Assembly: GCA_040357565.1 (NCBI GenBank)
Contig: JBDODJ010000002.1
Strand: one strand, 5' to 3'
DNA: 64,000 nucleotides
From: Cercozoa sp. M6MM
Lineage: Eukaryota > Protista > Endomyxa: Ascetosporea
Made by a program: the position numbers and the translations under genes. This document shows, piece after piece, positions 6,990-25,196 of the stretch. Numbering within the stretch: position 1 is the first letter of the stretch; each line of letters begins with the position of its first letter. Below the pieces are notes generated by a model. It did no database searches and was not told the origin of the DNA. It was given only the letters and a program-made list of their open reading frames with translations.

Positions 6990-7392
6990 TCGTAGACCAA
7001 TCACCCAGCAGTCGATTTTGTCGGTCTGGGCGGTGGCAAGGCACTGTCGACACCCCCTGCACACACACGCAGTGGCAGTCTCAGCGCAGTGGAACCGACT
7101 TTCGAATTCGCTCCGACACTGCAACGCAGCGACGAGATCGACATCGTCGCCAGCGACGAAGATTAGTTTCAGGCAGTTCACCCACAAAAACCGAACCGAC
7201 TGACTTCTCACGCGCGGTCTCACCGATTGAACATAAAGTATCAATTGACACCCGACCGCAAACAATTAAATTTACACTGCCTTATAAATCTAATGCTCGC
7301 TTGCCTCAGTTCACGGGATCTATTCAAAAAATAGTCGAATTTAACTGTCGTGTACGTACAGATGTAGCGTAAAGACTGGTAATGAATCGATA

Positions 7393-19478: not shown

Positions 19479-22400
19479 CTATTGCGAACGACTGGTTCCC
19501 TGCAGAGTTTCCGCGCGCATGTCTGTGTTTGGAGTCACAACGTCGAAGTCGCTCACGTTGCTGTAGGTGTCCGACTCGATTTTACTGTTAGTGGATTCTG
19601 ACAAAGACTCCGAAAACTCGCGGTGTCGTTGCAGACTGCTCGAGTCCGAAAGCGACAATGACAGGTCGGTTGCTGACGAAAACTGCGAGCTCGACACAGC
19701 CAAGTTGGCTACGTGAGGATTCAGCATAATGCGGCAGCTACACGAAGCGCAATGTTATCGAGAAATTTAAGAGCAGCTACACGAAGCGCAAAATATACAT
19801 CAGGCTGCTCTTAAATTTCTCGATCACTGTGTCCTGTGCATCACGATGAATAACAGAAACCCTTCCCCCTCCCCCACACCCTCCCCCGTGAAACGCAACA
19901 TACGAACAACCAGTGCAAAGTGTCTTTTTGCACGCACTGAACGGTTTCTAGCACGTCATTTGACAGCAACTGATCTAACTTGAGCTTGTTGTCTTCCAAG
20001 TCGCCAGTTGCAGCCTCGTAGCTAAATATCACAGTCGCTTCAAGGGAACACAGTTTAAAAGCGGTACTTCGCAAGCCAGCTTTCGATCTTTTCGCGCGTA
20101 TTTTTCGCAATAAAGAGCGGAAGCGACTGCGAAAAAGTATAGCACATGTGCTTTGCAACAGAAAAGAGTTAGTTTACGGGATCGACTGGTTCGGCAATTT
20201 CATGACACAGACCAAGCACCGTTTTTTCTAAGAAGGCAAATACGAACTGAAGGTGTGGTGTCGCGGGTTAAGAAGTGAAATCTCACCAAGCTCTTCATCC
20301 AAAGCGCTTGGGCTGCTGGTGTAGGATTCTGCGGCGGCACGCGCCGGCTCAATGATTGTGCGGTACTTATCACACGCGAGGTACAGATCAACAGCAGCAT
20401 CCCCACTTCATACCGTATCAAAGAACGTAAACTCAAAACAGTGGCAGGGAAAGTAGTTTGTAAGTTTATATTTACTTGTATTCGAGAAGCAAAAAGTAAC
20501 GAAGTGTCACTGCGGCAGTGCCTTCATGTCTGAATCAGTAGTGCATTGCTTTGCAAGAAAAGCAAATTATCTTTACACCCCAGAAAAAACCAATTACAGA
20601 AACTGCTCAAGCAGTTGAATGCGACGATCTCTTGAAAGCAGGTCACTCAAAATCTCGGAGACTGCATAAAACTAGGCTGAAACTGAAGCTGTGGATAGGG
20701 AACGAAATAGATGCAACAACAGTACGGGCGTGGCGCCATCGCTCTGTGGACAAGCGCTTGGCCTTCGACGCACGCGCACGGATAGTGCTTTGCCGCATGT
20801 CGTCGCTGGCCAAGCGACGAGGCGACACTTGGTCGTCCTCTTGGCGTTGAAACCTATCACCATTGCGTGTCATCAAAAGTAGCGTCCTGTAGAAAAAGTT
20901 CAAAGCAAAATCTACATGCGACTGAGTTGGCCAGACACTCTGTGCTTTCCTTTCAGCAGTTTCAAGTGCTGCTTTTGTATCTCCCTGTTCCCAGCAATTC
21001 AAAAACTCCCACAATCCGATAATTCCTCAGTTTGCAAAGCAGTTCGGTATACGCTGTGATGCGAGAGAAGGCGAGACGAAAGGCAAAGCGAATTTTGCGT
21101 GTGAACTGAGTCCTAAAAATCAAGAACTGGTGCTTGTAGGCACTAGAGGGGTACTTTGCGGTGGTTTACGGTGGCTTTGATTGCAAAGCGCTTTCGATCG
21201 CCGCCAAAAAATCAAAGTAGGCATCAATCGGAACTCCGTATTTGACGTGTGTTGTCGCAATCCTAATTGCGCGCTGTTTCAGCGTGTCAAAATCGTGCAT
21301 GGTCAGAACAGTGCTGGAGAGCATGTGCATAAACAGAGCGGCCCGGCGGCTAGACACTGCCACGGACTTCAAACTTCCAGAACCCTTGCGTCGCCTGAGA
21401 TTCACACAACGCACTGTGAGCACAGGCCCAAAGTCGGCGCGATGCTGAAACGCGTAGCACGTGAAGATCTCGGCATGCTCTGGATGTTGATTGAAAAAAT
21501 TCTGGTAAAGAAGCAAACCGATCTCGACTATCGAACATGATGTATTTTTGCATATTTGAATGACGAGAAACGGGTAATGAAGCACAAACTGAGCGAACAT
21601 ACGGCGTTGGCACTCAACGTGGTCAAACCTAAACTTAGTTCGCAAGCACGTGCGCATGCCAGAATCAGAAAGGAAACAAACTGTAAATTCTACCAGAACC
21701 CCTGCAACGTTGCCACCAGTTCGACTTCAAACGCGCTCAAAGTTTGCGACTTTGAGTCAGACTTTTGACTTATGGCGCTGGAACGGTGTCGTGATACAAT
21801 CGCCGGAAGTAACGTGAAAAATTAAGTTTAAGTTACTGAGAATAAAAAAGCTGTTTACCTAAACTTACTCAGGCGTCTTTGGCTGCGCGAACGAGCAAAG
21901 TACCTGTGCTCGAGGAGTCTACATATGCCAGGTTATTGCAAACGACAAATGACAAACAGTTAGAATTGAACTTGAACGTACTCAAAGATTTGGTTTCCCA
22001 AGTCGTCAATTGGCGGCACGGGTTTTCCAATGCATGCGTCGAATCCAGCTTTCATGTAAGAAGCTCTGTCCTCAGTGCTACAGTTTCCAGTGCACACGAT
22101 GCACACGCTTTTGTACTTGGCTTTTTGGGATTTTTCAAGTCGCCGTATTCTATCCTGCTGGGGGGGGGGGGTAGTGTGGATTCATAAAATTCAGCTAAGA
22201 ACGGTAGGAGGGAAAATAACGAACCAGGATAGCGATTCCGTCCCATACGCCTCCAGCACGCGACAAGTTAAAGTCGATAAAGTATATGCGCATGTCATGA
22301 ATCCTAAAACAAGAAGGTATTTTGAAAATCAGTTTAACTGAAACAATCAAGTATCAGCGGGAGTCTCTTGGTTTTTAACATCATTGTCTATTTTCAGTAT

Positions 22401-25031
22401 TTACCCGGGAGGTGACATTTCCTGCAGAACCTCTAGAGCACTTTCGCCGGTAGGAAATTGGTCTATCTTCCATTTCAGGTCGAACTTTTTCATCTACCAA
22501 ATGCGGGTGCTCAACGCACAGCAGTAGTATAATATACCCGTACCACAACTTGAATTTTCTTTGTCAATATTCGTCTGCATTGAGAGCGAAAATGTAGGTC
22601 ATCTACTACTGTAGCACAGTGACGTTTACTTTACCTGTTGGGTCCTTCGTCGTCAATTATCACCTAAATCAACGCAAGCAAGTTTCTTCAAGTCTAAACT
22701 AGCGTTGAACTGAAAGTAAAAATGTGGCGAATGTTGATATTACCAAGCTAACCTGTTTTCGAGAAGTCCACACGGCAACATAGCACAGTATTTAAACAGG
22801 AGAACAAAGGGGATGCAGGTCGGGTGTACTTGACGGAATTTGCTTCGATCAATTTGTGGCTCGCGTTCAGCAGTTGACAGTGTTACACCACTATGAAGAG
22901 GCAGTGTAAAGAGGTAAAACGCTGCGTTGTTGGCATAATATGCTACCGTCTCGACTCTGTTTCAGTTCGCACACGCACCGGTATTAAAAGCAAACATTCA
23001 CGTGGTCAACAAAGATGTCAGTCTGCTGGTTACACAATCAAGATATTTGATACAAGCATGAGCCGGATTTCTCTTCAACATCAGTGCCCTCACAGTGCTG
23101 CTTGTACAAGGTATCTGCATCTGGTGCGATTTCTGTTGGCATTGCTCTCCACCAGCTAAATTTACAGTCAACGCGCACAATACACACAGGCGCATGAATT
23201 TACAATCGCAAAATGCAGGATACGGGGACACGACGTCAATGACACCTCCCTGTCGCAAGAGATCGTGAACTCAGATTTTACAAACAAAGGGCCTGGCAAA
23301 TACGAGTGCAGTTGTCATTCTTTTGCTGATTAAAAGGCCAAGTCCGCTCCCACCGGTTCTTTTGATTCCAACGTTTTCAGTCTGTGTGTCTTCGCCGTGC
23401 AATTGTGCCCATTTGCCAAAGAGTTTTTTCACAGACTCAGGCGGGATTCCTGGGTAGTAAATTAAGCATGGCGGATGATGAACAAACGCAAAGGGGTTTC
23501 CATCAATTCCATTTTTAGTACACCTGTTCCAGAGTCGTAGACGCAAAACTGCAGGAAGTAGTTTTCGCCTAACTTTTCATTCTTGTTTGACAAGCCTGAG
23601 GGAGTTAGCGTTCTTGACTTCTCGAGAGATGAACCGACACCCACTTGTATCGCCACCTCGCTTTCTTTCTTAAAGATGGGGCGCTTCGTTAAAGTGGCTC
23701 GTAGAAGAACGAACCCTTTGTCTGTGAACTTTACTGCACTAAAAAAACACAAGTGCGGCGAATCTCCAACATTTTGCTACAAAAACATACTTACTGAGAA
23801 GATTGATCAGTATCTGCTTTAACAGTCGTTTATTTGAACGAAAGCAGTATGCTTCGACAGTGTCCGGTAGCTCTATCAAACTTCAAAATGATGACTCTAA
23901 CCAAAAAGTGTGCCGCAGAAACGCACCGAAAGCAATGTGAACGCCCGGTTTCGCCAGCCGACGTGGGATAGCACAGACTTCGCGAACGAAATCTACGATC
24001 AACTTAATGATGATAAATTCAAAATGGAGATTCCTGAGGCAGATGCGAACCCGAAATGTAAATATCATCAGTGGTGAGGTCCTTTTCATCAAGGTCCTCC
24101 AATTTCGCAACATCAAGAATGCCTACATACATACACTCAATTTCGCAACATTGAGAATGCAGACATACACACAGTACAGAAGTCAAACCATTGATGATGT
24201 CGAGTGTATGAAAGCAAGCGTGCAGAGCCTTTCACAAATAAAGTTACTCAAGTTATGGTTCACTACTTTTTGTGCGTAAGTACGCACGCGTGTGTACAGT
24301 GTACCTCATTGCTCTCATCAGCTATCTCTTCTACCTTCGTGGACAGTCGTTTTCGAACGCTAGAACGACAATCTTTTGGCTTCAGTGATCGAACCATTGC
24401 ACGCAAAGCGTAGGTGCTTTGAAGCGACATCTCAACACCTCTAAATATAAGTGCATAAAAATATCAACCGCCTGGGCCGGAGTGATATGTACCCCGATGC
24501 AGCGTTTAGTGGATTTCGAAGCTAATGAATGTTACAAACCACCATGCCCTAATTAATCAGCACAATGTTCACGGCGATACGGTAAATTTACCTCATGAAA
24601 GGTGAAACTGAGCATGTCTATTTGCACAATTTCAGAGAAACATGTGGCCAAAACGTGAGCAAAGAAAAGGTAAACTTACCTCTTTGTTGAGAAAGCAGGT
24701 CAGCGACACTGCGCTTTGCACGTATTGTCTGTCTTCGCACAAATGCGAAGACAACCAGAGCAACGAAGCCGATCCCACACAGAGAACCGACGCTCATAGC
24801 CCGCAAGGAAACTTCATTTAATGGCAAAAACGCAATCAAAGCGCAAACGGCAGCTACACTGACTTATACGCGAAAGTCAAGCAATGATCCAGCGAAAACG
24901 GAGCTTTATTTTTACCATGCCACAAAGCTGAAGCAAAACACAACATCCGCACGGGAAATACGACAAGTAGTCATAACCATGGCGACAGTCTTGCATGTGG
25001 AGGAGAGTTGCTCGTTGGTGGACTGACTCAT
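19479..25031 (-). CDS. Membrane hybrid histidine kinase: TM-HisKA-HATPase-receiver-globin-RGS
   Basis: Hand splicing: TM helices (about 24700-24870); H-box FTFHE|LRNPLNAASG; N-box KQILINLLSN|AVKFTDKG; G1 VYDSGTG; G2 GGSGLGLLISK; receiver VIIDDEGPNR...YFIDFNL...AGFDACIGKP; globin LLYQNFFNQHPEHAEIF...IATTHVKYGV; RGS-like LRYFLLLEYNGDAAVDLYLACDKYR...DTVIEKFKSS; Ser-rich tail. Start codon uncertain. Confidence 0.82.
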
Positions 25032-25196
25032 CCGCGCGGAACGGAACTCATCAAAACCAAACAGAAAATGTAAAGGCAACAGCCAACAAAAAAGGCTGCT
25101 TGGCTGTTGCTTTCACATATTAACACACAAACAAGCAAAGTGCAGTCGTGATAGCAGTAGCACACGCTAGCTCCTGTTTATCTGTTGTTCAAGCAA

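Follow-up and report, generated by a model that had tools for sequence, protein, structure and literature searches.

A predicted membrane-anchored hybrid histidine kinase carrying a globin and a probable remote RGS-homology domain, present as two ancient paralogs in a rhizarian amoeba

Signalling by two-component phosphorelays and signalling by heterotrimeric G proteins tend to be regarded as separate worlds, and sensor heme globins are, to our knowledge, known almost exclusively from bacteria, with the globin ahead of the transmitter. The question raised by the locus described here is whether all three kinds of module can be encoded in one eukaryotic chain and, if so, what such a protein might do. 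The locus lies in a 64,000-nt stretch (the window, positions 62001-126000) of contig JBDODJ010000002.1, contig C2 of the 23.6-Mb draft genome of strain M6MM. The strain, listed as 'Cercozoa sp. M6MM', is now Lemnamoeba sinaloensis, a marine amoeba of the Apofilosa (Rhizaria) obtained from fish gills (PMC11069148, PMC13746701). An earlier reading of the letters of the window (the original prediction) had proposed a single gene at 19479-25031 that fuses a hybrid histidine kinase, a globin and an RGS domain. Our analysis of the sequence makes it rather likely that the locus is one gene for a protein with two transmembrane (TM) helices and a cytosolic HisKA-HATPase_c-receiver-globin-RGS-homology-like chain, that it is one of two ancient paralogs, and that it works by a mechanism of the kind proposed below.

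The minus strand was read by chaining exons with dynamic programming, in which codon usage, GT-AG introns and a conservation bonus were scored. This independently gave one open path from an ATG at 25031-25029 to a TAG stop at 19481-19479, the limits proposed originally. Curated against the paralog, the model for the 1082-aa protein has 35 exons; all 34 introns are canonical GT-AG, 44-166 nt long, and the sole stop is the terminal one. The published intron traits of this genome (13 introns per gene on average, mean intron length 82 nt, GT/AG in 99.5%; PMC13746701) are compatible with such a model. Because introns as dense and short as these break the frame, the gene is invisible in a list of open reading frames, as the original prediction had held: the longest stop-free stretch between 19000 and 25700 is 186 aa. 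That prediction had also placed an H-box with its His codon at about 24595-24597, the N, G1 and G2 boxes of an HATPase, a receiver with DD, D and KP motifs at about 21980-22660, a globin at about 21050-21740 and an RGS-like domain at about 19790-20650, with GT-AG joins between them and an open frame from the receiver through globin and RGS-like domain to the stop. Every one of these landmarks was found in its place on the minus strand, and the curated frame is free of stops up to the terminal TAG; the identity of the last domain is a separate matter, taken up below.

Public annotation covers the family in two partial protein models. P0001 (MES1913396.1, 727 aa) belongs to the paralog on contig C385 and contains kinase, receiver and globin. 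P0002 (MES1906997.1, 391 aa) belongs to the copy in the window (copy A), reaches from a Met in globin helix E to the stop, taking in the RGS-like domain, and agrees letter for letter with the last 12 exons of our model. The features of copy A, given in window coordinates, follow one another in the 1082-aa frame in this order, after a first line for the whole:

19479..25031, minus strand: whole coding region, C2:81479-87031 on the contig, curated exon model; last 12 exons identical to P0002, colinear with the C385 paralog, some exon bounds provisional

24738..24947, minus strand: two TM helices (aa ~29-50 and ~61-79, loop of ~12 aa); no other Kyte-Doolittle peak of the protein exceeds 1.6

24052..24680, minus strand: HisKA/DHp region (aa 99-199), H-box FTFHE|LRNPLNAASG

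22893..24051, minus strand: HATPase_c (aa 200-433) with N box NLLSNAVKFT, G1 box DSGTG, F box KLFGKW and G2 box GGSGLGL; 3' end provisional

21984..22663, minus strand: receiver (aa 455-590) with its DD pair (VIIDDEG), Asp516 (codon 22275-22273), Thr (CIVCTG) and Lys577 (codon 22025-22023)

20984..21737, minus strand: globin (aa 625-765) in 5 exons, recognised by Pfam Globin in the paralog

20615..20983, minus strand: 81-aa globin-RGS linker (aa 766-846), 35% identical to the paralog in a gap-free alignment, ending in the conserved RWRHALSEI and covered by P0002

19737..20614, minus strand: divergent RGS-homology-like domain (aa 847-997) in 8 exons, with motifs LRYFLLLEYNGDAAVDLYLACDKYR, LCHEIAEPVDPSL and DTVIEKFKSSL

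19482..19736, minus strand: Ser-rich C-terminal tail (aa 998-1082, 25% Ser), probably disordered; unconserved, the paralog ending ~25 aa past the domain

The paralog carries much of the argument. The second locus, on contig C385 (copy B), came to light when the genome was searched at the DNA level with the globin exon. In translated comparison it is colinear with the window exon by exon from the H-box to the RGS-like region; about 30 exons are conserved at the protein level and the introns do not align. The curated model of copy B uses P0001 for its first 14 exons and our own exons afterwards, all bounded by GT-AG, and aligns with copy A along its whole length. Between the two copies the globin is 82% identical (nonsynonymous differences, pN, 0.13), the receiver 71% (pN 0.20), HisKA 65% (pN 0.22), HATPase 53% (pN 0.38) and the RGS-like domain 52% (pN 0.34), while synonymous differences are saturated (pS 0.75-0.86). 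Saturated synonymous sites, low pN and the same order of parts together indicate that the duplication is old, that purifying selection has acted on every domain and that the domain order predates the duplication. With P0001 and P0002 as queries, protein searches of the genome found only these two loci of this type. As a separate observation on copy B, a 183-nt intron in its receiver region (~6990-7170) is filled by a long (CA)n-type microsatellite with an in-frame reading HTHTHT..., in line with the published finding that this genome is rich in simple repeats.

Pfam scores reported here come from single exons of copy A and from P0001 and P0002, joined models having been handled within scripts. 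Pfam returned a weak TM-segment match for the exon of the two N-terminal helices and nothing else. Basic residues flank both ends of the helix pair, and both termini are predicted to be cytosolic. As these are the only two TM helices and the loop between them has ~12 residues, the protein would have no external sensor domain and the remainder of the chain would be cytosolic. The H-box is split by a 70-nt GT-AG intron between exons of 26 and 29 nt, with the codon of the phospho-acceptor His106 at 24597-24595, and the sequence FTFHELRNPLNAASGG, His106 included, is identical in the paralog. Pfam HisKA scored 19.8 bits on P0001 (E 8.5e-4), below the cut-off of 26.9. HATPase_c, in which a low-complexity insert separates the N and G1 boxes, reached 48.1 bits on P0001, above the cut-off of 26.4, and 22 bits (E 2.3e-4) on exon 23274-23576 of copy A alone; a six-frame profile search also placed an HATPase_c match at C2:85310-85453. 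For the receiver, Response_reg gave 25.3 bits on P0001 (E 1.8e-5, below the cut-off of 30.2) and E 0.016 on exon 21963-22181 of copy A alone; the DD pair, Asp516, CIVCTG and Lys577 are retained in both copies. The set of catalytic residues is thus complete for both kinase and receiver in the two genes, and a hybrid histidine kinase core (HisKA, HATPase_c and receiver) is supported, its activity being predicted.

For the last domain, the proposed position held (20614-19737), whereas its RGS identity did not hold beyond that of a remote relative. Pfam RGS (PF00615, cut-off 23.9 bits) had no match on P0002 at E ≤ 1 and none on single exons of copy A, and 0 of the 33 RGS matches from a six-frame search of the genome fall at this locus. 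A profile of ten RGS domains from the same genome, with exon pieces joined by script, did match both copy A (hmmsearch E 1.5e-4) and copy B (6.9e-6), each in a one-target search, the N- and C-terminal parts being matched in order. When the two paralogs were aligned with the RGS alignment by hhalign, the match covered 107 columns (template positions 8-117 of 120) at P 1.8e-4 and a probability of 49%. Its score of 30.6 lies 7.5 standard deviations (sd) above 120 column shuffles (mean 11.9, sd 2.5, maximum 20.3) and 4.8 sd above 120 shuffles of seven-residue blocks (mean 14.9, sd 3.3, maximum 26.2); none of the 240 shuffles attained it, and the reversed alignment scored 12.7. In the ESM Atlas, RGS clusters ranked second and third by features (0.88, under the 0.9 mark), and those language-model neighbours that have a family assignment are RGS. 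The motif FLLLEYNGDAAVDLYLACDKYR also parallels FLASEYSQENIDFWLACRRF of a typical RGS from this genome.

The strongest competing explanation is that the resemblance of the last domain to RGS is a chance result of helical composition. The domain would then be helical and specific to the lineage, the protein would combine a hybrid kinase, a globin and some other C-terminal module, and it would be unconnected with G proteins. The silence of Pfam and the hhalign probability of 49% favour this explanation, and further results weigh against an RGS identity in the same way. With P0002 alone against an RGS fragment alignment, hhalign found only 36 columns (P 0.007, probability 5%). Structural support is likewise missing, since the structural neighbours in the ESM Atlas are non-RGS (TM-score ≤ 0.45) and the AlphaFold single-sequence model of P0002 is unusable (pLDDT 39). 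Residues conserved in the other RGS domains of the genome are replaced as well: in the hhalign alignment, the typical 'EN' reads AA in copy A and AT in copy B, and the Asn of 'VN' reads Phe and Val, respectively. Yet the match spans the whole RGS profile in order, it does so independently in both paralogs, and it exceeds every shuffle and the reversed alignment. We therefore regard a helical look-alike as rather improbable and judge, with good but not full confidence, that the domain is a remote RGS-homology domain lying outside the Pfam family as tested.

The replaced residues also bear on what the domain could do. The 'EN' pair lies in the alpha3-alpha4 loop and the 'VN' Asn in alpha5-alpha6; we take them to be the G-alpha contacts Glu87/Asn88 and Asn128 of RGS4. 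Because these usual contact residues are replaced, classical action as a GTPase-activating protein (GAP) is doubtful, and the proposal that the protein gates G-protein switch-off by GAP action appears unlikely as stated, a docking or scaffold role being the more plausible one. Alignment of the RGS-like domain in copy B requires a 12-nt micro-exon (VYLL, 5106-5117 of C385) with GT-AG introns on either side (79 and 64 nt), and the exon that follows it is succeeded by an intron of 35 nt.

The globin is recognised more directly. Pfam Globin scored 35.5 bits on P0001 (cut-off 22, E 1.5e-8), whereas Protoglobin, with 18.7 bits, fell short both of its own cut-off of 25 and of the Globin score; the largest globin exon of copy A alone gave 14.3 bits with Pfam Globin (E 0.06). 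Alignment with P0004, a protein of seven globins, in which THVKYGV pairs with RHV.YGV and EIF with PLF, identified a B10 Tyr, a CD1 Phe and a proximal F8 His719 (codon 21249-21247), all present in both copies, and this set of residues argues for a working heme pocket. The same alignment places Arg at the distal E7 position and a 10-residue insertion ahead of helix E. A six-frame Globin profile search of the genome had no match at this locus, and a PDB sequence search with P0002 gave marginal globin matches only. When 1.84 billion representative proteins were searched exhaustively with HMMER, the globin exon matched four of them, namely the two models of this genome, P0004 (E 6e-5) and P0003, so that this globin is very isolated. 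P0003, an 849-aa tandem-repeat protein matched in ten stretches (E 1e-17), was rejected as a globin: the match is a repeat artefact, and Pfam gives it only scattered sub-threshold stretches.

One detail of the globin is provisional, namely the status of 21460-21395 in the CD region as an intron. This 66-nt stretch is in frame and contains no stop, and its retention would add 22 residues with the frame intact. We call it an intron because it is unconserved, because its flanks are 77-90% identical between the copies, and because the NCBI model P0001 splices out the equivalent 60 nt of the paralog (C385:6347-6288).

The globin may of course not be the input. It could be a heme-less or redox-buffering dimerising spacer, with the kinase driven via the TM helices into an ordinary relay of Hpt and response regulator and the RGS-like domain serving as a passive anchor. 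Kinases that sense within the membrane without an external domain exist, the distal Arg and the insertion before helix E would suit a spacer, and partners for such a relay may be at hand, as six-frame searches of the genome found one Hpt-like locus (C46:24016-24087) and one free receiver (C13:85578-85847). Against this stand the conservation of the globin, which is the best conserved part of the protein, and the retention of its pocket residues in both copies; we consider a mere spacer unlikely.

That all these domains belong to one gene, as originally proposed, is supported by the two colinear ancient paralogs and by the public partial models, which bridge the receiver-globin junction (P0001) and the globin-RGS junction (P0002). 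In both copies the frame is open over both inter-domain linkers despite the saturated divergence and differing intron positions. Copy A has no ATG from the end of the receiver to globin helix A, where a separate globin would have to start, and the same stretch of the paralog model has no Met. Several points weigh on the other side. The NCBI annotation splits copy A within the globin and ends copy B just past it; a Met is conserved in both globin-RGS linkers (DDMRQ and DRMRQ) and could start a separate RGS-like protein; and the exon-chaining program always favours an open path where one exists. Moreover, the exons between HATPase and receiver remain provisional in the curated model (exon 22956-22830 and the 166-nt intron after it), as do the two small exons that link receiver to globin. 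Genes in this genome are tightly packed, with a median intergenic distance of only 162 bp (PMC13746701), so proximity proves nothing by itself. The NCBI break in copy A is nevertheless an artefact, because it lies inside the globin fold, at the helix E Met. In copy B, the end of P0001 reads into an intron whose donor, GTCAGT, precedes the conserved next exon. On this comparative evidence it is improbable that two or three neighbouring genes have been wrongly joined, for instance a hybrid kinase with or without the globin and a small RGS-like protein starting at the linker Met of DDMRQ, and highly probable that the locus is one gene with one transcript.

How might the single protein work? With an external loop of ~12 residues, no module other than the globin is a plausible site of ligand binding. 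Its heme, through bound O2, NO or CO or through its redox state, would set the autophosphorylation of His106 and the transfer of the phosphoryl group to Asp516. The phosphorylated receiver, which stands directly ahead of the globin and the RGS-like domain, could then alter the latter's contact, at the membrane, with one of the organism's many G-alpha proteins. Given the replaced residues, this contact would more likely amount to docking or sequestration than to catalysis as a GAP. An alternative output would be a conventional relay onward through the Hpt-like and free receiver loci. In its full form, with heme-based gas or redox sensing and His-Asp phosphotransfer wired onto heterotrimeric G-protein signalling in one polypeptide, so that phosphorylation of the receiver, set by the globin, controls binding between RGS-like domain and G-alpha at the membrane, the scheme is tentative and we would not count on it. 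If true, it would join two-component to G-protein signalling directly for the first time, in a rhizarian lineage that has retained both copies since they arose by an ancient duplication.

Six-frame searches of the genome found many G-alpha loci (63 exon matches) and at least 20 RGS loci, to which the 33 RGS matches belong. The two-component set is tiny in these searches: besides the Hpt-like locus and the free receiver, HisKA was found at this locus, on C385 and, weakly, at C306:12171-12302. A third, more distant kinase-receiver protein of the genome is P0006 (MHM6MM_002223).

Among known systems, bacterial globin-coupled hybrid kinases (such as P0008 and P0018, 'protoglobin domain-containing protein' of Candidatus Xenobia) are similar in that they combine a globin, HisKA/HATPase and a receiver in one chain. 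The studied representative of globin-coupled kinases is AfGcHK of Anaeromyxobacter, in which O2 binding increases autophosphorylation (PMC8697598). In the bacterial proteins that we matched, the globin is N-terminal, as had been stated in the original prediction, and of the protoglobin type, whereas in the amoeba protein it follows the receiver and fits the classical Globin family better; the arrangement of an N-terminal protoglobin ahead of the transmitter is thus not the one found here. The bacterial kinases also have neither a TM anchor nor an RGS-like domain, both of which are present in the amoeba protein. A globin profile of the present family did not match the globins of the bacterial protoglobin kinases.

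Searches with the kinase core gave a related picture. The closest cores are those of P0006 from the same genome (31%) and of P0007, a PAS kinase of a EukProt transcriptome (27%), followed by bacterial Protoglobin-HisKA-HATPase-REC proteins (~29%, pairwise E 7e-25). Such bacterial proteins of ~570 aa (P0008-P0020) make up most of the non-eukaryotic matches to the kinase core, and bacterial protoglobin kinases account for 11 of the 13 non-self matches from outside this genome and EukProt. A special kinship with them was considered and rejected: the scores (60-74 bits) come from the kinase-receiver core alone and are equal to those of unrelated kinase families. In homologue searches, P0002 matched only itself, and so did an RGS protein of this genome.

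Eukaryotic hybrid kinases offer a precedent for appended domains. VbrasHK1 of Vitrella has the order HisKA-HATPase_c-REC-REC-cyclase, and two-TM cercozoan kinases are mentioned in the same survey, in which the words 'globin' and 'RGS' are absent (PMC6324907). VbrasHK1 and the amoeba protein both carry a further signalling domain in the same chain after the HisKA-HATPase-REC core; the addition is a cyclase in the former and a globin with an RGS-like domain in the latter. From the side of G proteins, TM-RGS and 7TM-RGS proteins (AtRGS1) are known in protists and plants, and rhizarians show a radiation of RGS architectures, which are lineage-specific (PMC3971589). These proteins likewise hold an RGS-type domain at the membrane beside G proteins, but their domains are typical and recognised by Pfam, whereas that of the amoeba escapes Pfam and lacks the conserved contact residues. 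The survey of G-protein systems contains no RGS architecture with a kinase, receiver or globin, and some RGS domains have, according to the same source, lost GAP activity (PMC3971589). Sorting nexins SNX13/14/25 carry RGS-homology domains without GAP activity (PMC7956473). A divergent RGS fold used as a binding or scaffold module is the point in common with these nexins and with GRK2 and axin, and the likeness is one of mode of action only. The RGS-homology domains of GRK2 and axin, too, are without GAP activity.

The original prediction knew of no described protein with this architecture. Both surveys agree with this, as do keyword searches of the literature (InterPro not covered), which returned no paper with the combination of histidine kinase, globin and RGS. 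We regard the predicted protein as a real, lineage-restricted domain architecture, made of known modules in an undescribed order and combination. A single eukaryotic chain would bring all three kinds of module together in a novel order, and selection has maintained it in two old copies. Such a protein could be expressed, and would allow one to ask whether a receiver can control a G-protein regulator and whether a globin of the classical type can sense from behind a kinase. Should the last domain not contact G proteins, the import would be less, and the protein would be an unusual globin-bearing hybrid kinase. The locus also illustrates how lineage-specific signalling architecture is concealed in intron-dense protist genomes, in which public annotation has cut this gene in the middle of a domain.

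Minor features were seen at the two ends of the coding region of copy A. A 10-bp palindrome, TCCGCGCGGA, occupies 25031-25040 and ends precisely at the A of the start codon. At the other end, the last intron (19798-19738; region 19738-19833) contains a direct repeat of ~19 nt, with two copies of ttgcgcttcgtgtagctgc. It also carries the reverse complement of cgagaaatttaagagcagc from the preceding exon, so that the exon end and the intron could pair. In the paralog there is no intron at this site, and KSSLICHIMLNP is contiguous there.

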